NCBI GenBank assembly: GCA_010909165.1
Contig: VJWM01000108.1
Location: 62,001 to 126,000 of the forward strand
DNA from: Anthoceros angustus
Taxonomy: Eukaryota > Plantae > Anthocerotophyta
DNA length: 64,000 nt
Reading direction: 5' to 3'
The position numbers were made by a program, and so were the translations under genes. Of the stretch, positions 5,561-38,985 are shown one piece after another. Below the pieces are notes generated by a model. It had not been told where the DNA came from and searched no databases. It worked only from the letters and a program-made list of their open reading frames with translations. Position 1 is the stretch's first letter. Each line of letters opens with the position of its first letter.

Positions 5561-5727
5561 GGGAGAGCCTACGGTCCACACTATCTCTGAGGCAACCATG
5601 AGCGGCGCAACAGAAGGCGACGTGGCATCCCTCGAGGGCATGGTTCAGGCGGTCAGGGGTAGTCCACGGGAGGAGAGGGTAAGCACCTCATCTGCAGCAG
5701 GAGGCCATATTATGTTGCGGCACATGG

Positions 5728-6300
5728 ATGAGGAATCTTATGTTCTGGTCTCTATGTGGAATGAGCAGCGTGCTTAACCTTACTGTCCATGTGCATGTGG
5801 GAATAGGAGGGACTAGGGCTTACCTTCTGCAAGTGAGGACTCGAAGCGGATGGTCCTTCCACTGTGCCCGGGTATGGGGGTTGATTCCCTGTTATACGGA
5901 GGCAGTCTTGAAGGAGCTTACGGAGGAGGAAGCCCGAGCGTGGGTGGAAGAAGAGCCAGTAATGATCTTCAGCAATAGGCAGCAAGCAAGGGTGGATGGA
6001 GCTCATGAGCAGGACACACCCCAGATTAGGTGCGAGGAGTCGACCAGCAGTGGAAGCGAGGTAGAGGTTCTATGGGAGGATTTGTCAGACCAGCGAGGAG
6101 GAAGGAGGGCCCATGGAGTCAGCGGAGGACAAGGGCGGTGACCGTCAGGAGGCGGAGATAACGTAGGCAGGGAGTAGTGGCATCCTAGGAATAGCGTTTT
6201 GGATGGGATTAGGTAGGATGCCATCTCAGACCTAAGGCCGCCCAAAAGTATAGGGGCGCCTCTTCGCGTTCCGCCGCTTTTAGGACCTGGAAAGTCTGGT
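5728..6300 (+). repeat. Dispersed repeat (retroelement LTR/UTR-like), with an inverted relative at ~36430-36780
   Basis: Shared translated motifs: EEEARAWVEE / EAEARAWREE and GSEVEVLWEDLSDQR / SESEVEVLGENRSDQR. Confidence 0.5.
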
Positions 6301-6730: not shown

Positions 6731-7178
6731 TGTGAGACCGTAAAGAGGAGTTAAGAAGGAGAACTAATTGGGGAACTAACAGTGGAGATTTTTTGTGGAT
6801 TGAAGAGAATCTAAACCGGTGCTGTCGGTGGAAGTGTGCACAAGAGAAAACAGCGTGAACAGTGTGTGTGTGTAAAAGCGGTTGAGAGGGAGCTGTGGAA
6901 CTCTGGTCCCTAGGAATCGGTGTGTGCGTGAAGTGTAGAGTGCAAAATAAAGTCGGATCCGTGCGCAGTGATAGCCATCCGTGGCAGGGATCCACGGCGC
7001 CGCGCGCCAGAAACAAGTTGCTAGGGTTTGGTGTGGCGTAACTTTCGCTGATGGCCAGCCGGGCGCGCACAATCTCGTGTCGTTGTAGTAAGGGGTCCGC
7101 TCCCAAGAGAATGACAGGCTCCGTTTTGCCGTGTTTCACCTCGTTTCTCACCTCACTTTAGTAGATTCGGTCTCAACA
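6731..7178. mobile_element. LTR-like unit, ~448 bp, copy 1
   Basis: Begins TGTGAGACCG and ends CGGTCTCAACA (TG...CA ends with a ~10-bp terminal inverted repeat). Repeated at 8505-8898. No TSD found. Confidence 0.55.
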
Positions 7179-7810
7179 CACACATTCATCGTTTTAGGCT
7201 GACTACACTCAGCGTTCACCGAGCAGCCCGGTGGCCAAAGTTTAAGAGACCCGTTCAAGCTCCGCGTCGTTCAAGTTGCTCCTTCACTCTAAGCAGGATA
7301 ATATTTGAAGCGGCTGAATATACAAACCCGCTTCCATAAAGGACAGTTTTCAAAACACCGGTGGGCACCAAATTCCACATAGAGTTGTTTTATGTTTTTG
7401 AGTGATGGTTCATGATATCCCTATCCTAAGGCAGGTACGTATTCCACCGATAATGCTTCTTAGGTATGGTAATGCATCGGCATGCCGCGCCTGCACCCAT
7501 TTCCATCGGAGCGTATCATTGGGTAGTGATTGATTGAAAAAGGTTTGATGCAAACAACTGTTATGTATGTAGAAAGGCATGCGTCGCTCAGAACTTCCTT
7601 CACTCTAAGGAAACACAAAACCTATCACAAATACCCTAGCTCAGCTCAGAGAAGAGTCTCTCGTGTGGCAGCGACGATATGCTATCCATCACCAATTCAA
7701 TGCTTTTGAGGCAGTGCTGGGTCTTGGTTGTCGTTCTCCATCATGGCATTTTCGGCATCCAAAGGATCAATAGGATTGCTTCGGTGTTGTAGTCCTGGAT
7801 GCCACAGCAC

Positions 7811-8413
7811 TCAAAGTTCTCTTCCATCATCCAAGATTTCCCCGTTTTCTCCTTCATCTGCTGAACCCCAAAGGTACAACTGCGCTTGGGAGACACCCTT
7901 CTGGACAAGCTCAATTCCTTTGCCCAAAATTGGGCTGGTCCTCGTCGATGTGGCTCGTGATTCAACTCCTCCTCGGCCCCGGAGTACTTCATATCCATGA
8001 ATCCGTTGTGGGATGAATTCCGCGCAACGCTTGTCCAAATCCACTGCAATGCAATTTCGACCACAAAGCAATGCTGCCAGTGTCGTCGTTCCGCTCCCTG
8101 CACACGCATCTACAATCCAGTCCCCCTCTTTCGAGAAGTTTTTGATCAGCTTGAGCATCAACCCCAGTGGCCTCTGATACGCACACACAACTAGCTTGTC
8201 CAATGACATATATAGCAGCTTCTTCACGACAGTATTGTGCCCAATGACTGCACGACCATTGTTGAAAGAGCCATGGACGTTGTTAGGCAACATTGAAACC
8301 CTGCTTAATTTGCTGGTAGTGGTAACACCCCAGCCCACCGTGATGTACTCCACAGTATCATATCCACCCTGATCATTATGCATATTGGTTTTGTCCCACA
8401 CAAAGGAGACCAT
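7811..8413 (-). CDS. C-terminal half of a beta-class amino-DNA methyltransferase (N6A/N4C type), open 200-codon frame in duplicate copy 1
   Basis: FVWDK...E-Y-I; YQRPLGLMLKLIKNFSKEGDWIVDACAGSGTTTLAALLCGRNCIAVDLD. This matches the canonical xQKP..L...LI...S.EGD.VLDPFxGSGTT..AA....R..IG.E of beta-class MTases (SAM-binding motifs X-I-II). Confidence 0.85.
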   Translation of the reverse strand: MVSFVWDKTNMHNDQGGYDTVEYITVGWGVTTTSKLSRVSMLPNNVHGSFNNGRAVIGHNTVVKKLLYMSLDKLVVCAYQRPLGLMLKLIKNFSKEGDWIVDACAGSGTTTLAALLCGRNCIAVDLDKRCAEFIPQRIHGYEVLRGRGGVESRATSTRTSPILGKGIELVQKGVSQAQLYLWGSADEGENGEILDDGREL

Positions 8414-8504
8414 TCCTCCACCAATGCACCATTGCTGGCATTGCCTCCCTTACAATATGCGACTCTTCCACACCATGCATAACTATCATTCCGATTTCTT
8501 AGCT

Positions 8505-8898
8505 TGTAGGAGCCGTAGAGGAGTTAAGAAGGAGAACTAATTGGGGAACTAACGGTGGAGATTTTTTGTGGATTGAAGAGAATCTAAACGGTCTTTGTCG
8601 GTGGAAGTGTGCACAAAGCGTGAGCAGTGTGTGTGTAAGCGGTTGAGGGGCTGAACTCTGGTCCCTAGGAATCGGTGTGTGTGAAGTGCAAAATAAAGTC
8701 GGATCCGTCGTGATGATAGCCATCCGTGGCGAGGATCCTGGCGCGCCGAAACAAGTTGCTAGGGTTTGGTGTGGTAACTTTTTGATGGCCAGTACGCGCA
8801 CAATCTCGTGTCGTTGTAGTAAGGGTCCGCTCCCAAGAGAATGACAGTCCGTTTGCCGTGTTTCGTTCTCACCTCACTTTAGTAATTCGGTCTCAACA
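8505..8898. mobile_element. LTR-like unit, copy 2 (indel-rich)
   Basis: Colinear with 6731-7178 and ends CGGTCTCAACA, with many 1-3 bp deletions. Confidence 0.55.
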
Positions 8899-9429
8899 CA
8901 CATTCATCGTTTTAGGCTGACTACCACATAGCGTTCACCGAGCAGGCGTGGGTGAAGCGTTTAAGGACCCGTTAGCGTCCGCGTCGTTTCATACTCTTCA
9001 CTCTAAGCAGGATAATATTTGAAGCGGCTGAATATACAAACCGCTTCCATGACGTGACCGTTTCAAAACACCGGTGGGCACCAAATTCCACATAGAGTTG
9101 TTTTATGTTTTGAGTGATGGTTCATGATATCCCTATCCTAAAGGCGGTCGTATTCCAAATAATGCTTCTTAGGTATGGTGCGAATGCATCGGCATCGCGC
9201 CTTGCGCCATTTCCATCGGAGCGTCGTCATTCGCAATGATTGATTGAAAAAGGTTTGATGCAAACAACTAGTTATGTAGTGAAAAAGGCATGCGGCGTCT
9301 CAGAAACTTCCTTCACTCTAAGGAAACACAAAACCTATCACAAATACCCTAGCTCCGAGCTCTTCATGACAGTTTGAGTCTGGTGAGCAGACGGATGCTA
9401 TCCATCACCAATTCAATAGAGGCAGGCGT

Positions 9430-12400
9430 GCTGGGGTCTTGAAGTTGTCGTTCTCCATCATGGCATTTCGGCATCCAAAGGATCAATAGGATTGCTTTCG
9501 GTGTTGTAGTCTGGATGCCTGCGCACTCAAAGTTCTCTGTCCATCATCAAAGATTTCCCCGTTTTCTCCTTCATTACATTGAACCCCAAAGGTACAACTG
9601 CGCTTGGAGACACCCTTCTCGGACAAGCTCAATTCCTTTGCCCAAAATTGGGCTGGTCCTCGTCGATGTGGCTCGTGATTCAACTCCTCCTCGGCGTGGA
9701 ATTTATCCATGAATCCGTTGTGGGATGAATTCAGCAGCGCTTGTCCAAATCCGCAATGCAATTTCGCAATGACCACGCAAACGCGCCCGCATCCGTAGCA
9801 TCGCATCTCGGTAATGCCCGAGCACTAGCTTGTCCAATGACATATATAGCGCTTCTTCCACGGCGATGTGCCCAATATTTGCGACCATTGTTGAAAGAGC
9901 CATGGGCGTTGTTAGGCAACATTGAAACCACTGCTTAATTTCTTTGGTGGTAACCCCCATTACGTGATGTACTCCACGATTATCATATCCACCACGATCA
10001 TTATGCATATTGGTTTTGTCCCACACAAAGGAGACCATTCCTCCACCAATGCACCTTGCTGTGCATTGCCTCCCTTACAATATCGACTCTTCCACCATGC
10101 ATAACTATCATTCGATTTCTTGCTTGTCATATCATGGAAAGAGTGAAACAACATGTAATTTGTGTCGATCCATCTTCACATCATGCTTTCCTTTGTGGAA
10201 TCCTCTTGGCACATCCATAACCAGCAATGTATACTTCCTCTTCCTTAGAAATCCTCGCATCCAACACATCTCTTGCAACCACTTGGTATTTAACAATAAA
10301 ACTCGTTGTACGGTAAATGCTGTAGGCCTTCCTCCATGTCCATGTCGGAGGCCTCTGTTCGTTCTCCGGACCTTTCCATGTGTGCACTTCAAGTATGAAA
10401 GCACGGAAGTCTTGGCGTTCTTGGATCTTCTACATCTTTCACTTGCTACACACAGCCTGAGTTAGGTGGTTAGTGCACAACAAGCTTGAAAAGATCGCGG
10501 GCGGCATGCGGCGCCCTCCCTACTTCCTTATAAAGCCTCAATTCCAACATGAGGAATGGGAGGCGGCATCTCGCCCTCCCTACTTCACCGTAATAAAGAG
10601 ATATACCTTCCCATCGAGCTGTTTGAAACCTTGCAATGACATCGTCCGAAGAGTGCATAGGGTATTCCTGCACCATGTCGAAAGAGTCGCATCCTAAATG
10701 CTTTGCCATAGCCACTTGTATGACATGAAGTTTCTTCCAGAGTGAGCTCCTTGACATACCATTGAGGTCAAGCAATCAAAACCTTTTCCGTCTGCTTGAT
10801 GAGCATTTTTGTCGGTCTACTGGTGGAATTCCTTGAAGCCATGGTTTCCCTGCATCTCTTCGGCTTCAACGCTTCTTCACCTCCTCTCTCAACTTTGCGT
10901 TTGCCCTCTTCTTCTGGTGCTGCAACATGTTTGGCTTGTTAAGCTCCATCGCCTCCCACTTTGAAAGATATATTGTCATTTCTCCAAACCTTTCCCTCCG
11001 GTTTCGCAATGCATAGGATATGTGTCCTGTTGTCCACTTTGTTACGCTTATCTTCATCTTCCGGCCTTCGTCATCCTCGATCGCCCTAACACCTTCTTCA
11101 TTCCTCATCACTCCGTCACGCTTTGCTATCTGCGGTTCATCTCGAGGTATATCGACACCTTTCGATAAAGTTCATCTTCTTCCTTTTGTCGACATTGTGT
11201 TGTGGTGGGTTGCCAATACGCATCTCTTGAAGAGTAAGCCCACGATAAACATGAGCCTCCATCCATTGGAACCTTGCTTTCCACGGAAATGTCACCAAGT
11301 TGCTTCATAGCGGCGTATGTGTGATTGCCTCCGGCCTCCCATAATATATTTTTTGCCACGAACTTACGTCCAATCAAGTTTTTCGATATCCTGCGATCGG
11401 ATGGGTCAATCATACATAGTAGTGGCGAACACCTTCTTCAATCCGACCTTCGAGATGACTCGAGCTAAATAGTTGTCCATGCCTCATCTACTTGCGAATC
11501 GAGCATGGAGTGAGGAGCGAAGCTCAAATTCTCCAGCTTCACAAGATCTCGAGCACTACCTTCTTAGCCGGCGATTCCGGACTTTTTGCAAGTAATCCTC
11601 GTCCATCATTGAGGCCTCGGTCTTTCTCCATCAGTTAACACATGCAATGTTGGAATATCACGCTCGAAGCCACAGCAGCGTCGACTTTTCCCGCTTGAAC
11701 CCTCGGTGTCCATGCTTTGAGATCTATTTCCACCCCAGCCGAGGGTTATACTCGTTCGCTTACTCTTCAACCACGATGCCACTTTGTCACGAAGAATGCG
11801 GAGTGCCTTCACGGGCGCGGCGTCCCTCCTCATCGACTGCGCGCACCTTCCGGGCGCGGCATCACCCCTCCTCATCGACTGCACCTTCACGGGCGGCGGC
11901 ATGCGGCCTCCCACCACATGTGCACCTTCACGGGCGCATGCAGCGTCTTCTCGGGGTGCCTTCACGGGCGGCATGCACCCCGTCTTCATCGATCGGTGCA
12001 CCTTCACGGGCGCGGCATGCGCCTCCTCATCACCTTGGGACCTTCACGGGCGCGGCATGCGCGCCTCCTCATCAACAGTCTCGGCCCGGTGCCGCCGTCG
12101 GACGGTGGGCGCGGCATGCGGCGCCCAATCGCAGCACCATCACGGGCCGGCATCGCCACCATCTGCACTCATCTGCTGCGAATATTGTCCGTCCCAGTCT
12201 TCTCTTTTCTTGGGATGGAGGCTTGGGGTTCAGGCTCATGTCAAATCTCTGGCGGGAATGGGGACTCGCCCATGGTGCTTTCAGTCGGCGTCCTTGGGAA
12301 TGCTCTGGAGGGCCTGCATCCGCCCTTCTCCTGCACTTTGCTCGTAACATATAGCATGGCACGAATACTTTCCCTCTCCTCCTCGCCCTTCTCGCGGTCC

Positions 12401-12535
12401 TCCTCCTCTTGGATGCCTCCACATCGTGGCCAGGATTTCGAGGATAGGCCCATCCTCCTCATCGGAAGGACCGAACTCCACCTCGTCATCCTCAAAATCC
12501 AAAGCAAAGTGGAAGTCACGTGTTCTCCATGACAT
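9430..12535 (-). pseudogene. ParB-like domain + beta-class DNA amino-methyltransferase gene (frameshifted in this assembly)
   Basis: Order from N to C terminus on the - strand: acidic N-terminus DFEDDEVEFGPSDEED (~12470-12520); ~40-nt coding repeats; ParB-like WEAGGNHTYAAMKQL (~11300-11345); YQVVARDVLD..RKYTLLVMDVPRG in the motif IV position (10201-10215); IVMHGVEE..FVWDK; degraded copy of the SAM-binding motifs (~9730-9860). Confidence 0.7.
11806..12075. repeat. Seven ~40-bp tandem repeats (core CCTTCACGGGCGCGGCATGC), probably a coding peptide repeat in the ParB-MTase N-terminus
   Basis: CCTTC starts at 11806, 11846, 11884, 11925, 11959, 12001 and 12041. The minus strand reads PVKVQSMRRGDAAP-like units. 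Confidence 0.85.
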
Positions 12536-12933
12536 TTCCCCGGTGACTCACAATTGAGTTCGTGATGGCTTCACACAAACATCAGAAAGATTTTAATGAG
12601 CAAACAAACATCCACGATATTAGAATGTAGCTCACATACGAACGCATAAACATTCGCAACCACATGAAAATGTATCCTTACATTACATCCCAAAGCCTCC
12701 GGAAAGTATAAGGCAGTTGTTTTGGCTCACACTTCTTTACATGCAAGCATGCTAGTTTCAACACAAAACAGTGTAATCATCTCTAATGATGCCTCAAATT
12801 CATACTGGCCGTGATGTGCAAAGAAGTCGGACTTGAGGATCTCCTGCATCCATAGTTGCCCACAAAACCCAACTGCTCTTTGGTTTGCGAGCGCCGTTAT
12901 ACCCAAAATCCGAGCTTGACATAGGAGTCCACA

Positions 12934-13573
12934 CTACATTGTCTTCATCCGGCTCTTGATTTGTGTCAAAATCCAATCTTGCTCGAGCACACCTGTGTTT
13001 GTGTGCCTCCCTGCTCTCGACATCGTGTAGGGGGATGGGTTTGGAGTCTGGAACTCACAGGCGTCTTTGGATATACCCTTCTCCACACGCCCGCCCGTTG
13101 CTTTGGTTGTGCTTGCCTTTGCTGCCCGACACGCCTTTGTTCCTCCTCTCCCGCTCCCCAACAAGATGCTCCTCCGGTGCAATGATTGGCTTCCACAGGC
13201 CGGCACCAATCTTGGATCTTCTGACAACCATCATCCTTTCTTTCCTTTCTTACGCCTTGGGCTTCTCGATGGGCACCATGTGGCGGTCCAATGTCCGAGT
13301 CCTTTTTGCTTCCGCTCGCCATGTCCTGCGCCCAACAACCATCATCAAATCCGGAACGAGGACCAAATCCACTTTGGGAAGAAAATACACCTCTCCGTCG
13401 ATGACACGTCCAGAAAACGTTGGGGAGCTTGCGGCGATGGCGTCCTCGCGAGAATTCGATCGCCGCCGTTGTGCCTCAAACACCAAATGTTCCGCAGCGG
13501 ACAGCCTCCGTTCGCCGTTGTCTGCCGGTGCGTATTCACATAACTCGGGCTTGGGCGGGAGGGCGGCTCTCAT
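12934..13573 (-). pseudogene. Third, frameshifted ORF of unknown function inside the transposon
   Basis: Overlapping minus-strand ORFs 13250-13573, 12966-13322 and 12934-13227 look like one broken frame. No family recognised. Confidence 0.3.
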
Positions 13574-13959
13574 TAAACCCTAATTGGGGCGCACCTTAAG
13601 AAACCCGCGTTCATCACGCAGTCACCCTAATGATCCGGTAGTTTTTGAATAAATGAAGCGGTCTCGTACCATGCGGCATTGCTTTTTGCCGTCATTGGTT
13701 ACAGCAAACACATTGGGGCGTAAGCGTATCGTAGGATTCTCAAAATCACTCATTTCCTATTTTAACGACCTTGAGCTCTTTTGATGGCGGGGATGAAACA
13801 AGAGCCGAAGCTCGGTGGAGTCTGTGGAGGCGATTGGGCCGGCGACCTTCCGAGCTACAACATCGCAACCATCTTTGCAGGCCACGCACTCAAGAGGCGG
13901 TAGGTAATGCTTTTTGTTGTTGCTTGGTGAGCATTTATCGCCTAGCTTGCGTTCAATTG

Positions 13960-16900
13960 GCATTCAAAATGAACATGTTGAGTCTGGAGATGAAGTGCGG
14001 GAAGGAGATGATGCTTAGAGTTCATGAGTGCTTGATTCCACTTTTCGAAGAGAGGCTAGCAGTGGCACCACGGAATGGGCGGCTGTTCATCTTCCTTCCA
14101 TGACCCGAGTAGGGATTCACATTCATTGTTGTGACATCTGTGAGAAGGTCTCTGCTAATTTGTTGGTCAATGTTATGTCATGTGTTCCGATCTGTAATGC
14201 TATGTTGTGCTTGGTGCAAGTCCAGGGTGGCGAAGGACTCACGAGCATTCCCGTATGCCCTGTACCCCAACTTCAAGGAACTTGAACATGTACCATGCAA
14301 AAAGTCACAGTGCGAGGAGGATCGCCGTGGCAGACAAGAAGGAGAGATCGCGCGGGATTGTTCAACCGTGTGGCGGTGGACATGGGGAGCTCCCAATGGA
14401 GAGGATGATGTATTTGAGACACCTCCACGAATTACGAGGAGTGGGTGGCAATGCCATCACATACCATCCCAAGCCTATTTGCGAGACATTACAACCTAGC
14501 GTGATGCGGGTTTTGTGTTGAGCGGGGCGGCGTTTCGCTTAAGAAGAGCGAGGAGATCTGCGGGGAAGATTTCGCAAACCTTGTTGCAACAAACTATGCA
14601 TCCCCAAGTTTCTGAAGAAGCTTTCCAAACAGCAGTGAGTTCTTGAGGATGGGGGCCGGGAGCAGAGACCTTCTGCATCTCTTGCGTCCTAATTTCCGAG
14701 GCCAAAACAAGAGACAAGGTTTATACTCACCTCATGGGGAGTTCCAATGCAATCTTTGTTTAAAGGCCTTGAATATCTATGCATAGGATCGGCAAGGTAC
14801 GAGGAGTTGAAGCATAGGGTCCTTGTAGATGCACCTTGGGATGCGAACAAGGCTAGCCCTCGTGTGCAATCCTCCCATGCTTTGGGTGCAATTGCTGGAT
14901 GGACTCCACTTTCCTCCACTTAGCGGAGCGGTTGCGAATGTGGAGGTAACCTACCGACACTTTCACGACTCGAGTTGTGGACCAGTACAAGATTGGAATG
15001 GAGCGAAGGACTACGGTTTGTTTCATGCATACTTCTTGCGGTTGTGGGCTCGAATTTCAAGCGTGTTAAGATACCAAAGTCCAACAGTTCTCAACTTGTT
15101 ATTATGCGCTGTGAGGTTGAAGTGCAACATACGGCACCGATGTCGGAAGTGACCAAGGTAGGCCCCTCCTCCGGTAATTGGTTTTCTCGAGTTGTTGACA
15201 ATGAGTGCGGAAAAGATGGAGTTTGTGGGATGGACTGCATGGCGCAATGGCGGCGAGATCGCGGAGATGGTCTGTGCCGGATGGCACAGCAACATGACCG
15301 TGATGCTCCTCGCATGGCTTGGGCATGCTGCAGGTGCTCCATGCTTCAAGGCGCGCGTGCGAGCATGCGGCGCCCATCGCCCTCGGGCGATATGGCGTCA
15401 TGCGGCGCCCGCCGTCATCGCATGCGCCATGCCGGCGCCATCGCCATCTTCGAGGCATAGAGGCGGCATGAGGCGCTAACTCGGCATGCTTGCGTGGGCG
15501 CGGCATGCCCATGCAGGCTGCCACAAGCAAGGCGATGGCATGCCTCGCGCATGCTCACATTCTTAGCCGGGCTCTAAAGTAAGGCGGAGGGTCATCATGC
15601 CCCACAATGTCTGTATGGTAGCGCCGGCATCTGCGCCCGTCTGTGAAGAGGGGCATGGGCGCGGCATGCGTCGCCCCATCTTGAAGCATCATATGCGGAC
15701 GCCCAGCGTATCTGATTCTCGTCACCCGGCACATTCGGTATCTCCCATGTGGAATGGTGCCAGCGGTGGAAAAGCAAGCCGCATAAGTGCGGCATGCTAC
15801 GCATGAACGCGGCCGCCGCCCATGTTTAGTATATATCTGGCGTTCGATCTCTATTCAATGTCATTTACAGTTTGGATTTTGCAGATTGGCATGATATAAC
15901 ATTCGATTGGTCCAATCATCGATAGCTTCTTTTGGTATATTTCATGGTTGGCCATATCTCACCGTATTGTTGATGCGAGCTTGTACCAAGAGGCGAACAA
16001 GCATCGTGTATCGATTGATGGAGGAAAGGAAGAAGTTGACCAAGCATCGCTCAAAATCTTACAAGGAGCCTCATAAATATATGTTGTTATCAATCGGTAT
16101 GGACCAAGAAAACTTCACTCCCACATATTTTGAGGTGGCCCAAGGACTTGAAGAGGAGAGTCGAATCACGGTACATGTGGTGGGCTGCATGATACATAAC
16201 TACACATTCAAAGCGGGCCTATGCATTATGCAAATTTAGCAAATGATGCAAACGACAATAACCATTATCCAGATGTTATACATACCTATACTTCCCAAGG
16301 TGTTATATCTAGTTGGACAACACATGTAGGGAGAACAAGAACCAGCTTTTATTTGCGTATTTGAACATGCTTGTGGAACTCGGGACGTTTGAGAAAGTGA
16401 AGGTTGGTTTCCTTCTTGTCGGGCATACACGACCGTAGATCAAATGTTCTCTTGTTTCTCCAAGCATTTAAAGCATAAAGAGGCGGTCCTTACCTACCAA
16501 GAAATTTTGAGGGAGTCATTCACGCCAAATCCGAGGTAATTGTGTTGAGAGGTTGCCGACTTAGGTCATTCGTGTGGCCTATAGGAGCGAGGATTGACGC
16601 GGAAATACACAGTGCGGAAGTTGAACAACCTATCATTTCAACACAGTTCAAAATCACGGAAGAAAGAAGTCGGCGGAAAATAGTCATTGAAGTAAGCGAT
16701 TACTCTACCTCCATTGTGGGAATCAAGATGGGCTGGAGTTTTGTCTCATGTTCGACGTCATCGGCCCGACTCCTTGGCACTCGGGCAAAAGACAAAAGGG
16801 AAGTGAGGCGGTCTTACCGCGTGAAGGCGTGGATCACTTGAAGAAAGGATTGATAAAGCTACCAACTTATTTGACTCTGCGGAGGAAGAATGGTGGGATT

Positions 16901-17148
16901 TGGAATGATCAAGTTGAAATATTGTACATTGGACTTGTCTGCATAACCCAGAGATGGTACGACGAGGCGTGAGCACACGTTCCTCCAATGCGAATCTGGA
17001 TGAAGCGGATTGGATGAGGCTTTGTTGCGAAATACCACAAAGGGCCATGTACAGGGGCCTATCAAAGTATCGAATGCCGGAGGAGGAAATGGAGAGGATG
17101 AATGGCAATATCACGGAGATAGAAAGGAATGTTCATTGTGGCGTGTGA
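13960..17148 (+). pseudogene. Frameshifted DDE transposase, Sola-like by motif
   Basis: YFLRLWA.NFKRVKIPKSN.FS.C (15030-15110); ERKKLTKHRSKSYKEPHKYMLLSI-GMDQ (16096-16107); VHVVGCMIH; LDNTCRENKNQLLFAYLNMLVELGTFEKVKVGFLLVGHT(H)..DQMFS (16313-16455). A GC-rich block at ~15230-15830 interrupts it. Confidence 0.75.
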
Positions 17149-18329
17149 AGACACATAACAGCGTTACGGGTAGCGAAGGTTCTTAATGTCCATCTCGCAC
17201 CCAGAACCCTATATACTTGTGCCTTTGGTGTGAGCGGACCACCGATGCTTACGAGGGCAAATATGTTGGGAGTATTCTTGAGGAGTGGAATGAAGAGCCA
17301 CTGCGAAAAGCGAGGAAAGAGCAAAGACCTCCAAACATCCAAAAATGTTTGTCAGAAAACCGTTATAGTATACTATGGTTTTAAACTAACTTCCGAAACA
17401 CATGCACGGATAAAAAGCTATAAAGGCGAGTGCTCTCCGAATGCACCTCCAATGCACTTCCAATGAGGCGATGGAAGTGACAATGATGGTAATAGCGTCA
17501 TTGAAGGAGGGTGAGGTCTCGATTCGAGGGAGAGTAATGTCATTAGTTTTGGATTTGGGAATAAGTGTGGAACAACTCCGCACCTAGTTTCATGATAACA
17601 TGACTGGATTATAGTTTCATGATAACATGCGCGACAATATATTACTTTCGCTTGAAATCTTTTGTTAAGACAAGCGTGTGACATCATGCGGCATTGAGTT
17701 CCTTCCAAACCTAGCCTGGACATACTTAGTCGGACGGTACCATCCGGCATGTATGGTTGCCTTTCACTAGTGAAAACCCCTTCGTATATAGCGCATTTAG
17801 GCGTTGGTGAGCATTATTTGCCATTGTTTCACAATCCACCAGTGCATGTAATCATGATCCACTTATGGTATCAATGTTGATGTACATGATCCAACTCCAC
17901 TGGTAGGCATTAGGTTGGGCGGTGGCGGCATGCGGCGCCACCCTCTAACAGCGTTCAGCGTTACAACATTATTTCAAAGACCAAGGCGGATGGCACTCCT
18001 TAGTTCGAGAATATGATTTCAAACACGGTCATCGCTCTTGTTTCACAATGATTGGAATGAATGGCACGGAAAATCACGGAGGCAAGTATTTTGCACCCAT
18101 AAGGATGGGGAGCCCACGGTATTATTCCTCGTAAGTCGCATCTTTGCAACCACCGTTCTACTAGTGTGCGGTGGAAAGGAAGATGCCATGACTATGAGTT
18201 AAACCCGTTTTCAATGCAATTTGGCAATTACATCCCAAAAGGGTATTCACAACCATCAAAACACCCTTCGGTTTAAATACCCTCGGAGCGCTTGGTGTAT
18301 ATTCGACGCTTCAAATATTATGCCTTTTT

Positions 18330-21300
18330 CTAGTCCGTTCCTCTCACCACTCACACTACCCTCGCCGTCCTTGGAGGAAATCGCGGTGGCTGCCAGTCGG
18401 TCCTCCTCCGCTCTGCGGGCCTGTCGTCCCGCCCTCCGGAGTTCCTCCGGCTCACAGCGTTCGGTCAGGTCCAACGTGGGGCGGCTGCTGATGATGCAAG
18501 GGTCCCCGGGCGCTATTCCTGCACACCACAACACGTTAGGGTCCGTCACCAAGACCTTGATCGGTCTCTCCGGTCTTGTCGGCCTGCTTTCGATGACTAA
18601 GGACTCGCGTTGAGAGCACCAAGGGGCTGCAGAAGACCGGCATCAACACCAAGAAAAGATGATTTACCGGGCTGACCTCTTATACTCGCGAAGGTCGGCG
18701 TCTTTATTACCTCTATTACGGTGAGGGCCATTCGGTCTTCATCGGCCTATTATTCTCCCTATTCCTCATATCTCCGCCGTCGGTGGTGGGATAGATTGAT
18801 CTTGGCACGGCTGGCCGAGCCGTATTTTGCAGGCGCAGTGGATGATCGCGGTAGACCCCTTCCTCTTCGGGGTGCAGCCATTGCGCTACGTGGCGACAAC
18901 AGCGATCACCACTAAGTCCTCCTCCCCTCGGGCTCTCTTATCTCTGGCGGGCCCTGCGCCCAGGGCCCTCAAGGCCAGATCTGGGGCTGGTGATTGGTGG
19001 CTCTCCCCCACTCCACAGTGGACCTCGGGACCCAGTCTCGACTCGAGTCTGGACCTCTAGGTCCGTCTTCCCTCGGGGTCAGGTCCCACATGTGTCCTTC
19101 TTTTGGGTTCGGGACCTCGGGGTCCGGACCTCTGAGGTCCGGTCTTGGACCCAACCCTTCCCACAGGTCGGACCTCGGGGTCCGGTCTCAGAGTCTGGAT
19201 CTCTAAGTCCACACACTTGAGGTCGGACTTGAGGCCGACCTTTCAGAGTTCGGACAAAGTCCGGACCCAGCTCTGGTTACTCCTCACGGGCGATCACAGG
19301 CTCATCCAGCCCTCCCTTGGTTCCCGAGTGCCAGTTGCGCCTTTCACGGCCTCCCGGTCCTCCTCCCTTCCTTGAGTCCGGGGTGCAGTGCTTACCTCGA
19401 TATAGTGACCCTTCCTCCGACTCCTCCGCCTCTCCCACCTGGCTAACTCTTGCCGTCATCAAGCAGCGCTCCTAGGGTCCCGTGGCTGCTTGTTGTCCCA
19501 GATCCTTCCTCCCTCGCTCCTCCTTGAGCCCTTGGAGTCCGCCCTCTGCCTGGGGTGGCGCGGGACCTCAGAGCCTTGAGGAAACTCTGCGTGGTAGTAG
19601 GCAAAAGATGAATCGACTTGTTGAATCGCCTCCTCCACATGAGCCGGAGCACCGGTACTCCCTCCTCCGGAGGTGCTCGGTGGGCATGTTGTCAAGCCTC
19701 TTGGCCCGTCTCCGTGGCCAAGCTTGCCATGGCAGGCGGACTCCCTTGATGCCGTCAGGCGGCCTCCGTCACCTCTGCGGCCTTGGCTGCTTTTCGGCCT
19801 CCTCCTCCGTCGTCGTTCCGGCTCTGCCGGTTTGCGGGCCATGGTGAGCTCCCCTCTGCTTCTTTATGGACGGCGGCTGCTTCTCCTCCAGTGCTTTCTT
19901 CCCTCCGTTTATCCTTTCCGGTCACCACTTCCTTCTCCGGGCGGGCGGTATCCCGTCGACTCACGGCTTCCTCCACCTCTGCTGCGGCTCGCGGCGTCGA
20001 ACTCCTTGCCGTCGCTATTCTCCTCCGTCTTCAAGCGGGCCCAGGCGCTCTATCTCACTCGAAGTCTTGGATTCTCTGGGTGAGAACCCCTAACTTTCCG
20101 TCGTCTTGGAGTTGCGGCTCAAAGTATCCTTCTTCCTCCGGCTCACCGCCGCCTTCTACCTCCTGTTTGCACCACAGGGTCCCCTATCTCCCGAGTCTTG
20201 ACCTCCAGCGCCTCCTCACGGCTCGGCCTGCTTGCTCAGCTCTTTCGGCCTTGAGGTTGGCAGCTACCCGGCCGTCTCCTCCACGGTTCGATCACGTCGA
20301 GATAGTGATCGACTGCGGCTTCCGCTTCCGCCGCCTTCACACGAGCCTCGTGAGCTTGCTAGTCGATCGGGCCGCCTCGGCCGGTCGCGAGCCTTCTCCG
20401 CTCTCGGCCTCCTCTCCTGCGCTCCTCTCAGCTGCGAGGTCTTGGCCGTGCTTGGGCCTCCTGCGCATGCCTCGGTGCTCACCCGGTGAAGAAACTTGTC
20501 GATCTTCTTGCCGTCCGGACCTCACGCTCCGCCTCGGCTTCCTTCCTCGATCGGCGGCTTCCGCTTCTCCTGCGCCTCTGGGCCGCCACACAGCCTTGAG
20601 CACCATCCTCGTGGCCTCCACCTCCTTGGGTCTTCTCCGTCCATGAGACCCCAGACATACCGTCCATAATGATGGCAGGCTCCCGCCGTGTCTCTTCCGG
20701 CCCGGCTGAGGAGATGCGGGAAGTCCGTTGTGGGCGGGCATCTCGTCCGTCAGGACCTCCATACCCTTGATCCGGGCGAGTCGGGGCAGGCTCTCGGACC
20801 TAATCGGGACCCTTAGGTCCTGGTCAGTCGAGCCTCACCTTCTTGGCCCTCTTGGCCCAATTCCTTCGCCTCTTTCTCCACAGGGGCTCGGAGGGTGAGG
20901 GGTTCGGGAGGCGGCCCTCTTGCCTCTCCCGGTCGGAGGCAGGACCCGGCTCGGGTGGGGCTGCTGCGATGGCCTCCCGCTCCTTGGGCGGCGTCCCTTT
21001 CCGCCCTTCTCACTGCCTCCTCAGCCTCCTTGCCACTCCGTTGGCGAGGCAAAACCTGGCGCCGTCCGGTGCTGCGTTGGCCGGGTGGCAAATCTTCCGC
21101 CTCTTGGTCCCCGGCAAGTCCGTCGGGGCTCGGTGCCGTCGTGGTGGCGGTAGTCTGTCATGGAGCCGCCGACTCATACAGGGCCTCCTCCTGCTGCGTC
21201 TTGCTCCGGTGGGGGCACCAAGAGAAGGAAGCGGGGATATCTTCCCACGCTTCCCTAGGTGGTGGTCGTTCAGAGCGTATGGAGTCAGGAATCCTCGATC

Positions 21301-22850: not shown

Positions 22851-24956
22851 GGAAGCAACCATGTGAGAAACTCCTAAGAGGACACTCTTGATGTGGGTTG
22901 AGGTCGATGCCATGGTGAAGCAGCATCATGTACCTTCTCCATTAGAAAGCAACAGTACCTTGGTCTTGCAATCGGTTGTCGATGGCGGGAAGCCAACTCA
23001 TCTTTTTGTACAAGACCATGAGACTAGAGGTTTTGGAAGGTTTTGGAGATTTTGGTAGGGGCCATTCACGGTTTAGGGTTTGCTAGGATCTTGTACACCT
23101 TGCATTAGATTAAGCTTATGAATAGCTTGAAATGCTCAAAGCGTCTGACTTCATTATTTGACAACTTGGAACTTGGCCGCCGCGATAACTATACCGCCGT
23201 GGGACAATTGTCATGGCTCGGATTGATTACATAAGATAAATCTCATAATGTAGGAAAGATGGTAGCCGTATAATGAGTAGGTAGAACAACATGAGGTAAG
23301 AAAAGCACACAATGATGCTAAAGAAGTGCTTTAAGCTTAGCATAGGGGCTAGCATAGGAGAATGTGCCCTGCTACCTTTAGATTTGAAGATGAAGATTGA
23401 AACCTAGGCTCGGAGCAAAATGCCTCTTGGCACTATGAAAGTGGCACCTTAGGAATTGTGCACTCGAGCTATAAGAGTGAAACCAAAGTGAAATGAGAAC
23501 AAGACCCGTACAGGACCATGGCTATGAATACACAAGTCTTGGTACATTTGTGGTGGCTTTGTCATGGTTGTTTTTACATATTAATATCGCTGTCCTTTGT
23601 GACCTTGTTGTGTGATGTCCTATAGTGACATACGAACCGCAGATCATTGTATATGTGTGTCGCCATCTTGATTGTCCATTCCGTGCGACCACCCCTGGCC
23701 CCTGTCATACATAGTGAAGCCTGGTGGGGTCACTCCATCTTCTCACTCAACCTTGCTAGGACATAGGATATCTCAGTCTAGAGTTGTGAGATAAGGAGTA
23801 CCTTGTGACTGCTATATGTTTTTCTGTTCCTTGTCACAAAACAAAGGACTTAAGAGATTTTTCATAATTCCCATTGAGAGGTTTTGAATGATTCCCGTGC
23901 AAGATACTAACCTGTCTATGCATTGTCGAGCCATATAAGAAATTACGTTTATTTATTTAGCAAACCCTATTTTATATTACTATTTTATATTTGACACGTT
24001 TGATTAAGTTACCATTTAGGTGAGTGAGAAGGCGGATGAGGAGGCGGCGGTGAGGAGGGGCGGCGGTGAGAAGCGGCGGTGAGTATGAAGGCGGGCGGTG
24101 CAGGTGCAGGTATGGAGTGCGGGCAGCGGGCGGGAAGGCGGTGAGCAGTGCAGATGCGGGTATGGAGTGGCTGGGCCAGGAAGCAGGCCGAGCGGCAGGC
24201 GGTGGTGCAGGTGGGTGATGCGATGCAGGCGCGGGAGCAGGAAGCTGGCGGGAGGCAGGAAGCGGCCTTGTAGTGGCCAGAGCCAGCAGCGTCTTGGCCT
24301 TGGCCTTGAGCCTTGGGCGGGGCGTGGCGGCATGGCGGGGCGAAGCGGCGCGGGCGCGGGCAGGCGATGGCCGGCGGCGGCGTAGCCGCTTTGACAGCCT
24401 TGGCCGGCAGGCTTGAGCCGAGCGGGGCCGGGCAAGCCTTGAGGCCGGGCGGCCGAGGGGAAAGTGCAGGCGCGGGCGGCAGGCGGCTGTGAGGCGGGCA
24501 GGCCTGGCGGGCGGGCGCGAGGCGAGGCAGTGCAGGAGGCAAGCGGGCGGGGCGAAGCCTTGAGGCCAGGCGGTGCGTGGGGCGGCGGTGCGGGAAGCGA
24601 GCAGTGCGGGGCCGAGGCCAGGCTGGCAGTGTGCTGAGTAGCATAGGAGTGGGCAGCATATGCGGGGCAGGCCGAGGCAGGCTGGCGTGGTGTGAGGCGA
24701 GGCGGTGTGTCGAGGAGTAGTGCAATGGGCGCCGTGCAGTGCAGGCGAGAAGTGCGATGCAGGCGGTGCGGTCTGTCTCTGTGAGGCGGGTAATGCAGCC
24801 TTGATTGCGGTGTCTGTGGCGTGTGTAGTGCAGAGGGGAGTGCGGGCAAAGCTGGCATAAAGTGGCGAGGCGGGAAGACTCCGAGGCGAGTCCAGTGAGG
24901 CCGAGGCTGTCAAGGGCAAGGCGGTAACCTGCTGAGTAGGTGTCTGAGGAGGTAGG

Positions 24957-29267: not shown

Positions 29268-31235
29268 GTCTAATTCTTCTGCAGCATGCATGGACTGGAG
29301 TGAGCGATCCCTCGCGTGGGGTGGAACTTTCGTGACAGGCAGAGTGAGAAGTTAGATAGATTGTTTTACGGGAGTTCGTCTAGTGGCGAGTATAAAGTTC
29401 TAGCAATTTTGCGGTTTGGGTGTTATCTGTTTACTGGGGGACTGTTTGATAAAGCTCCATCAGGAGTTCAGGCTTGAACGCAGAACGTTGAGATTTCCAT
29501 CGAAGTGGAACAATTTTGTCTTTTTTCAACTGGTCTTCATGCACCGGCTTTGAGGTCCTGAGGAGATGAGCGAATGCGTTGGCTCTTTTTCTCTCGTGAC
29601 GGATGGGAACCTGGATCAGGGCTTGCCTCCCAGGTGCCGATTCTTCGACTTGGAGATATTCATAGATTGTCGTTCTGGTTGTTTCGCATTGGGAAACGTG
29701 TTTGAATAGGCAGCCCGGTGACTGACCACGCTGGCATTCACCGGACATAGACTCTACGCCGTGTCCATTTGATCTGCGGGCTGATGATCCTAGTCGTTAG
29801 GGCAAGAGATGTTGATAGAATGTCATGTCTGACGTGGACAAAATCGTAAAAAACATGTACACAAGTACTCGCTTCCTTTATCTCGGAGGGCGCAATAAAC
29901 TATACGCAGATAAAGGCTGTTACCTTGTCTTTTCTCTGAACGGGTCATCTACATGGTAGACCTTGATTTACAGATTCTTATACCATACGATGTCCCTCGT
30001 CAAGGGGATCCTCCCGCCCTCCTTCCCTCCTTTCCCTCAATAGCAATTATATCCTATTACCCATAGCATCTGATTTAGAATTATATAATTTATTAAATAA
30101 TTTTAATTAAAATATTATAAAAAAGGCAGTTATTATTCTAGTTCCCACTCTAGAAATCTCGTTTCACATTCCAGTTAAAATATACAAGCAGATAGGTATG
30201 TAACCAAAAACAAATATCAAAAAACTTTCCTCAATCAAAAACAAATATTTGAAAAATTTGGTCAATCAAAAACAAATATTTAAAAATTTTCCTTTCAATA
30301 TTCAAAATGGTTGGTAGTTTTGAAATGTGTAATTGTGGGGCTATTCCTATGGCATACCAAAGAGGACAGAAGGGACGGACATTTTTTGTCTTCTGCAAAA
30401 CTTTTGGTGTCCGGTTTGGTAACGTAGAAATGGGGTAGCCAAAGGGGGACGCCACCGCCAGTCACGGAGAAAGCGAAGGAACTTTAGGGTTTTTCCCGCA
30501 CTCACTCTGTTTTTCTCCTGCGAAATTTTTTCCTTCACACCAGATTCCGATTTAAGTGCGATGCGTGGGCAAAACAAGCCCACCTGCCCGTTTTAGGGTT
30601 CATATCCTAAAGGCTGGGCGAGGTTTAGAAGGCGGCGAGGCAGGCGGCGGGGCGCTGATGACTCACGAGGCGGTGCAGGCGGCCGGCGGCGGCGAGGCAG
30701 GGGCAGGCGGGAGGGCGGGTCAGGCAAAACACGGCGGGCGGTGCATGGCGGCGGCGAGCGGCGGCGGTGCTGCGGTGGCGGGCAGGCGGCCGGCGGCGGC
30801 GCCTTGATTTGGTCAGTGCGGCGCGCGGTGGCGGGCAGGCGAGCCCAACCACGCCATGGGCGTGGCGAGCGGCGGCGGCGGCGGCAGTAACGCCGTGGCG
30901 GGTTTGCGTGGACGCGGGCGGGGCGGTGGGGCTGCGATCGGGGCAAAACACGGCGGGGGGCTGCGGTCGCGAGATGGGCGGGGCGAGGCAGGCGGCGGGG
31001 CGAGGGCGGAGGCGGGCGGGCGGGCAAGCGTCTGAGCAATGGGAGGCGGGCGGCGGCAGGCGGCGGCAGGCGGGAGGGCGGGCGGGGCGGTGAAGGAAGG
31101 AGGCGGGCGGGCGGGCGGTGAAGGAAGGAGGCGGGCGGAGGAAGGCGGTCTGTGGCGGCGGCGCGGGCAAGCGTCTGAGCAATGGGAGGCGGTGCATGGC
31201 GGGCGGCGGCAGGCGGCGAGGAGAGAGCACCCGCA

Positions 31236-36299: not shown

Positions 36300-38985
36300 A
36301 TACATCTAGCTGCGGTTCAGCACAGCTCGCTTCTCTCCAGTGTCTAAAAATTGTAGCCCTCTACCACGAGCGCTCCTACCAATCCAGGCAACTACAGCTC
36401 CACAGGCTCTCGAAACATCCTATCCCCTAACCCGAAAAGGAAACCCCGGACCTATGATGTCGCGCTCCCCTAAAATCATGTGCCGCCTCATGATTCTTTG
36501 CCCTACCTACCCATAGGGGTCCCCTCTCGACCACGCCTTTGATCCGAGCGATTCTCTCCCAAAACCTCCACTTCGCTCTCGCTGCCTGCGGTTTCCTCGC
36601 GCCTTCCCGTGGACGTCGCGCGCCTATTGTCTCTATGCACGTATCGCTCCTCCTCATTTGGGCAGCCACCATGTGCTCCTCCCTCCATGCTCTAGCCTCC
36701 GCCTCGCTCATCTCCTCCGGCACCACTTGCGGAGGTGGCGCCCAGCTCCTATTCGAAGGAACCATAGTAGCGCATGTGATCAAGATGTCTGACGTAGTTT
36801 ACGCCCCTCATCCCAACAACCACATACATATTTAGAGTGAGCACCGCTCACCATGCGGCGAAGCAGGGACATGAGCATCCTCATCAGGCCGCTGTCGCCT
36901 TCTTATCAGAGGTCCTTACCCTCTCCTCCCGTGGACAATCACAGGCGGCTGCCTCACAGTTCGAGGGTTCGACTCCCCATCTGCGGCGCTCACAGTGGCT
37001 TCCCCACCTCGGTTCCTCCTTCCGCGACGGTGGCCGGTTTAGCCACCGTGGTGGTAGCTTCCCCCACAGTGGTTGCTTCGGCTCCTGCAGTGGCTGTTGC
37101 TCGGCCCTTCTTCGGTTTGGCCGCCTCTCTCTTGACTCTGGCCCTAGCTTCGTCTCTCTCCCGCTTGTATCTCTCCGCCAGCTTCTTGAATTTCTCCAGG
37201 GGCGCCATTGTCTCCACCTGCTCTTGGACTCGTGAGACCTCATTCTGGAGCTCCTCAATCGTAGCGTGCGCCTCTTTGACTTGATTCACTAAGGCCTCCT
37301 TTGGGTGGACATGGCCCTCAGCTGTTCCTGCGCCTTGCCGAGGGCCGCTTCGCACTTCCGTCTGCAGTCCTCTGCCACCTTGTTCTCGCCCTCCAGTCCC
37401 TCCAACTTTTCCTGGAGCAACTTCTCCTGTTGCCCATGCACACTCGAGTGAGAGCCATGGGTGCACAGTCGAGAAGGTCACTTTGAGTCAGCCATGGCGG
37501 TCGGGGCACTGCAAATTCAGATTGGGCTGTTCTGTGCCCATCCCCTCACAACAATTCCACTTGGTGTCTATCTCCATTTCAATTTGGAGTCAATGAGATG
37601 TCGTCAAAAATGTCCTTGAGCTCCGTGGTGCATTAGCCTTCCTCTCCTAGGGGTTGGTCTACAACTACCCCTTTATCGCAACCTCCCTAGTGACTCATCC
37701 TGCACACACGGAGGACAACTGCCGTTCCTTTTTGTCTTCCTCCTTCACCAGCGTCCCTGCTGGATTTCGACTGGTGACCCTAGGTGTAGCTGAGTTCCTC
37801 CTCATTGCATTGTCTTCCTTTAGCCGACCCCGTTCGATCGTCGCCCTCCGCTTCTTGCCCTTGAAACCTTCCCACCTTCAAGATCTTCTAGAGGCGCATT
37901 CCCAAGCTGGAATCCTTCTGAATCCTCCTTACCTCCTCCTCCTCTACCTTGGGTTCTCGACGGTTTCCGGCTATGAAGAGGCGGAACCTGACTTCCAACT
38001 CTGTTAGGCACGGAATGCGAATACATGAATCAAAAGGTGAAATCAAGGAGGGCCGAGGGAAGGGAAACAAGTCGCCTCTTCACAGGCTCTTTCAAAAATC
38101 ATCCTCCCCCAATCGATTTGTGTGCCCTTAACCACTTCATGAAGAAAGACCGGAAGTGATCCGCCATATGGTCCAACTTCGGTTGCGAAACACAAAATCC
38201 ACTTGGCCAACAGTACCGAGACACGAGTTGGCGAGTCACCCATCCATTATTCACCCTCACTTCCCAGGCTTCATAGTGCAGCTCTAAAGTCTTCTTCCTC
38301 AGGGGTCAATCACCGAGCTCCCATCCTCCGATTCTTCTCGCCCATATGCTGCTCAAAAGGCCCCAAATCCCAATTTTGCGGCCTCTTCCTCGTCGCCTCT
38401 TGCGACTGGTTCTCAGTGCAGGCGCACTCACCAATCTTTGGTCGTAGCACCATTTCTTTTCCATGAATTCCAGGCCCAGTTCCTGCACAAGGCCGCCAGC
38501 TCTAACCTTCCAGTGGTCCATGTTGGGCCACTGCATGGTGGGAATTTCGGCCGCGGCTCGAGGCGCCATCTCCCTTCCTCCTTCGTCTTCAAAAAACTCG
38601 GCTCTCCTGCAGACGATGGTCAGAGAGGAAAAGCACCACCCTCGCGCGCTCCTTCCGCTCCTCCTCGCGCTGGTCCTCCTGCCTCAGCGCCTCTTTCCCC
38701 CAGCGGGATTCGCGCGTGGTTTCCCTCCTCGGCCCGCCGCCCGGCTTCTGACGATCGACCGCCTGCTCACCGTCGGCCAAAGCGGTGGATTGGCCCGGTA
38801 GCGATTGCATCGTCGCCCGGCTGCTCGCTCTCGATGCTCTCCCACAAATTCGCGACCTCGCGATGTCGGTGTGTTCTTCTTCGATTGCGCTCCGGTGGCG
38901 CAACACCTCCGCCACTAGGGTTGTAAACTCCCCACAGTCTGTCGTCCGTTTTGACCCTTTGTGGTGGAGCTAGCCACCTCCCCAC
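36300..38985 (-). mobile_element. Retroelement-derived insert with a broken accessory ORF (coiled coil + IDWGRMIFE segment)
   Basis: Coiled-coil peptide EALVNQVKEAHATIEELQNEVSRVQEQVE (36990-37481); EVVKGTQIDWGRMIFE (38043-38243); relative of 5728-6300. Confidence 0.4.

Follow-up and report, generated by a model that had tools for sequence, protein, structure and literature searches.

A probable decayed transposon pairing a DUF7869 transposase with a head-to-head ParB-like/methyltransferase gene in Anthoceros angustus

Why should a plant genome hold, between one pair of terminal inverted repeats (TIRs), both a transposase gene and a DNA methyltransferase gene of prokaryotic or phage type? The question is raised by a 64-kb stretch of Anthoceros angustus DNA (contig VJWM01000108.1, positions 62,001 to 126,000; hereafter the window, in whose coordinates all positions are given). 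We conclude that positions 9009-18325, about 9.3 kb, very probably represent an inactivated member of a multi-copy TIR transposon family, with a transposase of the DUF7869 type and, head-to-head with it, an accessory gene that joins a ParB-like part to a methyltransferase. The original prediction, made from the sequence without database searches, had described a cut-and-paste element that captured an amino-methyltransferase of prokaryotic or phage type. As a trait of the family this description holds, because the same layout of transposase and methyltransferase is found in a complete element on a metagenome contig (L003) and in the published Ectocarpus element Sola1-1_Ec32.

Results

The two ends of the element were predicted to be imperfect repeats of about 30 bp, and terminal comparison bears this out. 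The left TIR (9009-9038, plus strand) and the reverse complement of the right TIR (18296-18325, minus strand) have in common the exact 15-mer ATAATATTTGAAGCG, and at both ends this is adjoined by the exact 9-mer GAATATACA, the offset between the two ends amounting to one indel. In the 64-kb window ATAATATTTGAAGCG has three exact matches (at 7298 and 9012 on the plus strand and at 18307 on the minus strand) against 0.04 expected from shuffles; an ungapped repeat finder missed the TIR pair because of the indels. Terminal inverted repeats are a hallmark of Sola1 transposons, and the window element possesses them.

The remaining match belongs to a further copy of the left TIR (7295-7324, plus strand; exact 15-mer at 7298-7312). 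Its outer edge is supported by a contig from another genomic copy, which matches from 7295 inward and continues into unrelated sequence outside, so that the break falls at 7294/7295. This repetition of the left end had been noticed before, and it proves to belong to a longer segment that is duplicated in tandem: unit A (6744-8507) adjoins unit B (8517-10127), and the two are about 87% identical, with about 40 indels (blastn self-match, MAFFT alignment). Each unit includes the TIR itself, together with approximately 550 bp of external flank and the 3′ end of the methyltransferase gene (minus strand), and unit B runs on into the remaining element. The flank of the left TIR (6744-7294 and 8517-9008) is itself a high-copy repeat, with a contig depth of up to about 245 near 8822, and the element therefore appears to have inserted into another repeat.

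A plus-strand transposase, also part of the prediction, was recovered in kind. Pfam scans of start-to-stop open reading frames (ORFs) gave no transposase match, including to known transposase families, and scans over 38 ORF pieces returned PF01555 only, plus DUF7869 (PF25273) from the appropriate 39-codon piece. The lead to the transposase was the 8.9-kb L003 contig, on which a DUF7869 protein is encoded on the strand opposite to a ParB-like-methyltransferase protein (P0016). In the window the DUF7869 core occupies 15961-16533 (plus strand; Pfam, tblastn) in three reading-frame segments. The 39-codon piece at 16313-16429 alone matches DUF7869 at E=5.5e-15, the L003 protein aligns to 16024-16521 over three frame segments, and at least 30 DUF7869 proteins align to 15961-16533 (tblastn). 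Within the core we read GMDQ (16090-16116), LDNTCRENKN (16313-16342), LLVGHT (16412-16429) and VDQMFSCF (16435-16458). The nearly invariant residues of the family lie within IDGMDQ, L-x-x-DN-x-x-x-NKN and VGHTHEDIDQ.

An AlphaFold model of DUF7869 (pLDDT 84, pTM 0.83) has the β-β-β-α-β-α-β-α order of RNase H-like nucleases. Compared with retroviral integrase cores, IstA and Mos1, the model gives VIA Z values of 8.0-8.7 over 130-160 residues; Foldseek matches were weak, the best being mostly RNase H-like proteins. On the strength of this model DUF7869 is read as the probable catalytic core of a DDE/DDD-type transposase, with conserved acidic residues located in GMDQ, LDN and HTH[E/D]xxDQ. Chara braunii has multiple copies of the family, which is also present in oysters, corals and sea cucumbers, as expected for a eukaryotic transposase. 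Because the same layout occurs in the published Ectocarpus Sola1-1_Ec32, the transposase group is most likely Sola1. Two parts of L003, an upstream transposase exon (385 amino acids) and a 243-amino-acid ORF, found no match in the window.

The minus-strand gene had been taken for an amino-methyltransferase, and homology confirms it as a predicted β-class N6_N4 amino-DNA-methyltransferase (PF01555). The open 212-codon 3′ piece in unit A (7814-8449, minus strand) matches Pfam N6_N4_Mtase with 45.8 bits, where the gathering threshold is 26.7 (E=9e-12), and along it are found FVWDK (8390-8404), YQRP (8168-8179), the S-adenosylmethionine (SAM)-binding motif I DACAGSGTT (8084-8110) and RNCIAVDLD (8033-8059). 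An exhaustive HMMER search of 1.84 billion representative sequences retrieved 1540 homologues at E<1e-3, the best only 41% identical; named homologues include Ginkgo biloba Gb_37443 (P0011, 670 amino acids) and Chara braunii GBG86584.1 (P0022, 1825 amino acids). When the family profile was searched against the PDB, N6-adenine enzymes came out on top (DpnA/M1.HpyAVI at 1e-13, CcrM at 1e-11, followed by MboIIA and RsrI), and the rotifer cytosine-N4 enzyme 8s9m was matched at 4e-9.

Motif IV, LLVMDVPRGF, was located at 10198-10227 (minus strand) by tblastn and tblastx matches to P0006 and L002 and by an alignment of relatives (A1). On the minus strand it lies upstream of motif I (8084-8110), which is the β-class order, and motif IV precedes motif I also within the single proteins P0006, P0016 and P0011. 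A conserved linker between the ParB-like and methyltransferase parts (10668-10736, minus strand) matches positions 613-681 of L002 with 57% identity over 23 amino acids, collinear with the other matches (tblastx). A possible acidic N-terminus of the accessory gene, with an ATG at 12535, was noted from the ORF list at 12284-12535 (minus strand); this piece has no homology support.

The motifs of the peptide originally quoted for this gene all exist, but the peptide is a composite of two units: the stretch YQRP..DACAGSGTT..RNCIAVDLD (8033-8179) lies in unit A. The in-element counterpart of the same exon (9706-10074, minus strand; ORF comparison and MAFFT alignment to unit A) has kept FVWDK (10015-10029), while the stretch from YQRP to motif I is gone through deletions of about 88 nt and scrambling. 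The only intact motif I (FxGxG type) is thus that of unit A, outside the 9009-18325 TIR pair, and not between these repeats as had been proposed.

What does motif IV tell us about activity? In alignment A1, W-x-K-x-N, Y-Q-K-P and the G-S-G of motif I are common to the relatives that match over the full length of the piece, and their upstream motif IV reads D-[ILVF]-P-[YRH]-G. Ten relatives have a recognisable motif IV and align with the piece from its start; nine of these show D-x-P-[Y/R/H] and one has DPP followed by an aromatic residue, with none of the S-type. The canonical tetrapeptide (D/N/S)-P-P-(Y/F/W) is absent, the window having D-V-P-R and the family D-x-P-[Y/R/H]-G. The arginine of the window is not a private mutation: the DLPRGL form recurs in L002, L004, L005, P0002 and P0010. 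A subfamily in which the aromatic residue of motif IV is replaced by arginine, D-[LV]-P-R-G, accordingly counts at least six independent sequences, including the window at 10198-10227.

To judge from these sequences, the conservation of D-[LV]-P-R-G could reflect either a functional shift or a pseudo-enzyme. Because the arginine is conserved, a non-catalytic role is possible, and we regard it as a tenable, if doubtful, alternative that the accessory protein of this subfamily is a pseudo-enzyme or a DNA-binding regulator that binds DNA or SAM only. Such a protein would fit the conserved, non-random substitution seen as DVPRGF in the window and as DLPRGL in five independent relatives, and also the departure from the canonical motif, in which the replaced aromatic residue positions the flipped base. 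However, motif I, YQ[KR]P and the remaining fold are conserved, and sister clades retain D-x-P-Y-G.

The N-terminal region of the accessory gene (11221-11332, minus strand) consists of GGNHTYAAMKQL (11297-11332) and VTFPWKARFQWMEAHVYRGLTLQEM (11221-11295), which are split by a frameshift due to one extra base at 11296. Both halves can be aligned with GGGHSREARERL...VYAGLT..E, a conserved block found N-terminally in P0016, P0011 and P0022. The segment around GGNHT (11318-11332), which had been proposed as ParB-like, therefore does stand as a conserved N-terminal region of the relatives. Its strand-GGxH-helix pattern resembles the DGxHR box, and by language-model features the window piece and P0016 adjoin ParB_N/DUF6551 clusters at 0.92-0.94. 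Moreover, the phage proteins that match the methyltransferase domain of the family are ParB_N+N6_N4 fusions, and published algal homologues have been termed ParB-like by their authors (PMC12477816).

Between the putative start of the accessory gene and its ParB-like region, a 40-bp unit with the GC-rich motif GCGGCATGCGGCGCC is repeated 6.8 times in tandem (11806-12073, plus strand; TRF). Seven or eight copies of the motif fall in this array, and five further copies form a second cluster upstream of the transposase core (15359-15680, plus strand; motif search). With at most two mismatches allowed, 10 copies were counted within the element against 0.17 expected in the whole window, and nearly all share one orientation. 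By analogy with the repeat arrays of L003 and Bostrychia, the GCGGCATGCGGCGCC repeats may be candidate binding sites for the ParB-like domain; the 40-bp array could equally be a low-complexity coding repeat.

Both genes of this copy are broken. In the transposase core there is a stop at 16237-16239, the frame changes on both sides of 16313-16429, and 4 nt are missing at 16430-16434 within the HTH[E/D]xxDQ motif, where other genomic copies read GHTHDQVDQMF. The accessory gene carries the frameshift at 11296, the loss of the motif-I stretch in unit B and further frame changes, from motif IV to FVWDK, that are common to units A and B. Host exons in the same window are open (612 and 313 codons of an XDH/aldehyde-oxidase gene and 802 codons of a LETM1-like gene), so the decay is genuine. 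Assembly noise was considered as a source of the indel-rich differences between units A and B and is ruled out by these intact exons of up to 802 codons. Read from its sequence, 9009-18325 is an old, inactivated transposon copy with both genes dead, and a working gene at this place, as originally supposed, was not found. The simplest history would be that the element inserted, that the 1.77-kb left-junction segment (6744-8507) was then duplicated in tandem, and that both genes subsequently went through a long decay.

The element family is multi-copy in this genome. A low-coverage DNA run of the organism yielded 123 short contigs on the element at 88-99% identity, 49 of them on 7200-13100 and 74 on 13000-18900, the deepest coverage being over the transposase core.

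A complete 8.85-kb element of the same architecture is present on L003, a Joint Genome Institute (JGI) metagenome contig. Its TIRs (20-47 and 8844-8871) are 28 bp long and 96% complementary, and inside them a DUF7869 gene and a gene for the 789-amino-acid ParB-like-methyltransferase protein P0016 stand head-to-head with intact ORFs. The proteins of L003 share 54-65% identity with proteins of Chara braunii. A repeat of about 34 nt occurs four times (5661-5941; two direct, two inverted) directly 5′ of the accessory ORF, and 'GATAT' is found on both sides of the element, the left one offset by 2 nt. L003 and the window element thus share the head-to-head DUF7869 and ParB-like-methyltransferase genes within TIRs and the internal arrays by the accessory gene. 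They differ in that the ORFs of L003 are intact, it has DFPYG as motif IV, its ends (AAC start) bear no relation to those of the window element and its repeat has another sequence.

Several observations weigh against the reading of 9009-18325 as one such transposon with a ParB-like methyltransferase. No target-site duplication (TSD) was identified, as there are no matching 4-bp flanks at any plausible end position; the end can be placed only to within 1-3 nt and the copy is old, which bears on this search. Bao et al. are said to have given 4 bp, in 2009, as the length of the Sola1 TSD. The Sola1 label, although the most likely one, is drawn by analogy with the Ectocarpus element. The ParB part of the original prediction did not reach significance: Pfam gave no ParB_N match for the region, a search of its profile against PDB sequences gave noise only, hhalign found no match to either of two phage ParB_N domains, and an AlphaFold model from a six-sequence alignment was poor (pLDDT 52). 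With arginine at the aromatic position of motif IV, catalysis appears uncertain. In addition, the 40-bp array was not seen among the contigs of other copies, and one very small RNA run, of uninformative size, contained no RNA evidence for the element.

Could the two genes have come together by chance? Two unrelated nested elements, or a host methyltransferase gene beside a transposon, would be in keeping with the lack of an identified TSD at 9009/18325 and with the patchy coverage from other copies, which is zero over 13000-14770 and 15170-15950. We nevertheless consider this very unlikely, given that the head-to-head pair is enclosed by one TIR pair in L003 and is seen in the published Ectocarpus element, and that both window genes lie between the same TIRs and are equally decayed. 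A single transposon that carried both genes is the reading that we retain.

Long intact plus-strand exons of a xanthine dehydrogenase (XDH)/aldehyde oxidase (Fer2_2, FAD_binding_5, CO_deh_flav_C, MoCoBD_1/2) lie at 56535-60375 of the window, and a LETM1-like ribosome-binding domain is encoded in an open exon of 802 codons at 41400-43808; an Rfam scan of the window gave no match. Because these host exons of 300-800 codons are intact, the context is genuinely eukaryotic and the assembly sound. Bacterial or phage contamination, or an assembly chimera, might be suggested by the prokaryotic or phage type of the methyltransferase domain. This is scarcely credible: the nearest full-length methyltransferase relatives (Ginkgo, Chara) and the transposase family are eukaryotic, the neighbouring host genes are intact and eukaryotic, the GC content is unremarkable, and an independent DNA run of the organism contains many diverged copies of the element.

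Relatives were also sought in Chara and in protein databases. When the halves of P0016 were used in word-indexed protein searches, only 2-4 close relatives were found. In a tblastx comparison of the element with the Chara locus L001 (Chara braunii BFEA01000570.1), the methyltransferase was the only part that matched. This locus carries a gene model for 1825 amino acids that extends over 29.5 kb and has two methyltransferase-like segments (near 11930-12156 and 37840-38031), which suggests that repeated copies of the element were fused or wrongly merged during annotation. Residues 619-736 of P0022, outside the methyltransferase domain, gave weak tblastn matches (about 30% identity) to the window at 24186-24551 and 30682-31056, probably a low-complexity similarity.

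Discussion

How would an intact member of this family work? As homology and fold suggest, the transposase of active members would cut and paste the element at its TIRs. With its ParB-like part the accessory protein would bind the repeats of the element, and it would methylate DNA; to judge from its sequence relatives, adenine N6 is a likelier target than cytosine N4. It may also play some part in silencing. That intact members encode a working D-x-P-R-G enzyme, which loads on GCGGCATGC-type arrays and deposits N6-methyladenine (6mA) or N4-methylcytosine (4mC) on its own DNA, seems to us rather unlikely; if true, a streptophyte or land-plant genome would hold a transposon-encoded, self-marking epigenetic system. 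The window copy cannot answer the question of self-methylation because both of its genes are dead. If intact copies exist, they would provide a natural test of a transposon that writes 6mA or 4mC on itself in a plant.

Elements of this kind have already been described in algae, in papers from 2011 to 2025, and the present one is a new host record. What is new is the presence in this genome and in streptophytes more widely, the assignment of DUF7869 as the probable transposase core and the D-x-P-R-G subfamily. DUF7869 thereby gains a concrete meaning, being read as the RNase H-like core of cut-and-paste transposases. Beyond this genome, annotated hypothetical proteins of Chara and Ginkgo belong to the element family. 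The original prediction had further seen in this element a capture within, or an entry route into, early land plants. This part was not sustained, since the pairing exists in a Chara-like algal contig and in brown algae such as Ectocarpus, and the capture is therefore old and not a land-plant event.

Where does the methyltransferase come from? Prophages are enriched in fusions of a ParB-CTPase fold with an N6_N4 methyltransferase. The ParB_N+N6_N4_Mtase fusions of Streptococcus phage Javan93 and Gardnerella phage vB_Gva_AB1 resemble the accessory gene in domain order and in their homologous methyltransferase, whereas the identity of the methyltransferase parts is 24-29%, the ParB parts are not alignable by hhalign and the phage genes encode about 410 amino acids. 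By sequence, a phage ParB-methyltransferase probably was the ultimate source. A tie had also been proposed to Marchantia MpDN4MT1 and the bdelloid rotifer N4CMT. These are likewise β-class PF01555 enzymes of bacterial origin in eukaryotes, but MpDN4MT1 is reported to carry TSPPY, in contrast to the D-x-P-[Y/R/H]-G of the present family, and the rotifer enzyme (8s9m) scored 4e-9 versus 1e-13 for DpnA. With a D-type motif IV in place of S-P-P-Y, and with N6-adenine enzymes as the best-scoring relatives, the family does not side with the cytosine-N4 enzymes and the proposed tie found no support.

A second transposon-borne combination is known from the red alga Bostrychia moritziana, where the Plavaka genes PAG2 and PAG3 encode a PF01555+SET protein and a ParB+2OG-oxygenase protein (bioRxiv 10.1101/2025.02.11.637652). 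As in the window element, a methylase of PF01555 and a ParB-like protein are borne by a transposon, and repeat arrays adjoin the ParB gene; unlike there, the two domains reside on two proteins and the carriers are Plavaka DDE transposons, not DUF7869/Sola-like ones.

The comparison with Ectocarpus Sola1-1_Ec32 goes furthest. This 21.5-kb element encodes on the opposite strand a 1104-amino-acid protein with ParB-like and N4C/N6A methyltransferase domains, which its authors propose to bind and modify the DNA of its own element, and related accessory genes occur in green and red algae (Genome Biol 2025, PMC12477816). The accessory protein is intact in the brown alga and broken in the window copy of a plant-like genome, and we liken the two by their layout. 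Both combine a transposase with a single opposite-strand ParB-like/methyltransferase gene, for which 4mC or 6mA is predicted. As in Ectocarpus, the accessory gene of the present family is located within the element, points away from the transposase gene and joins both domains in one protein, the single protein being seen in L003.

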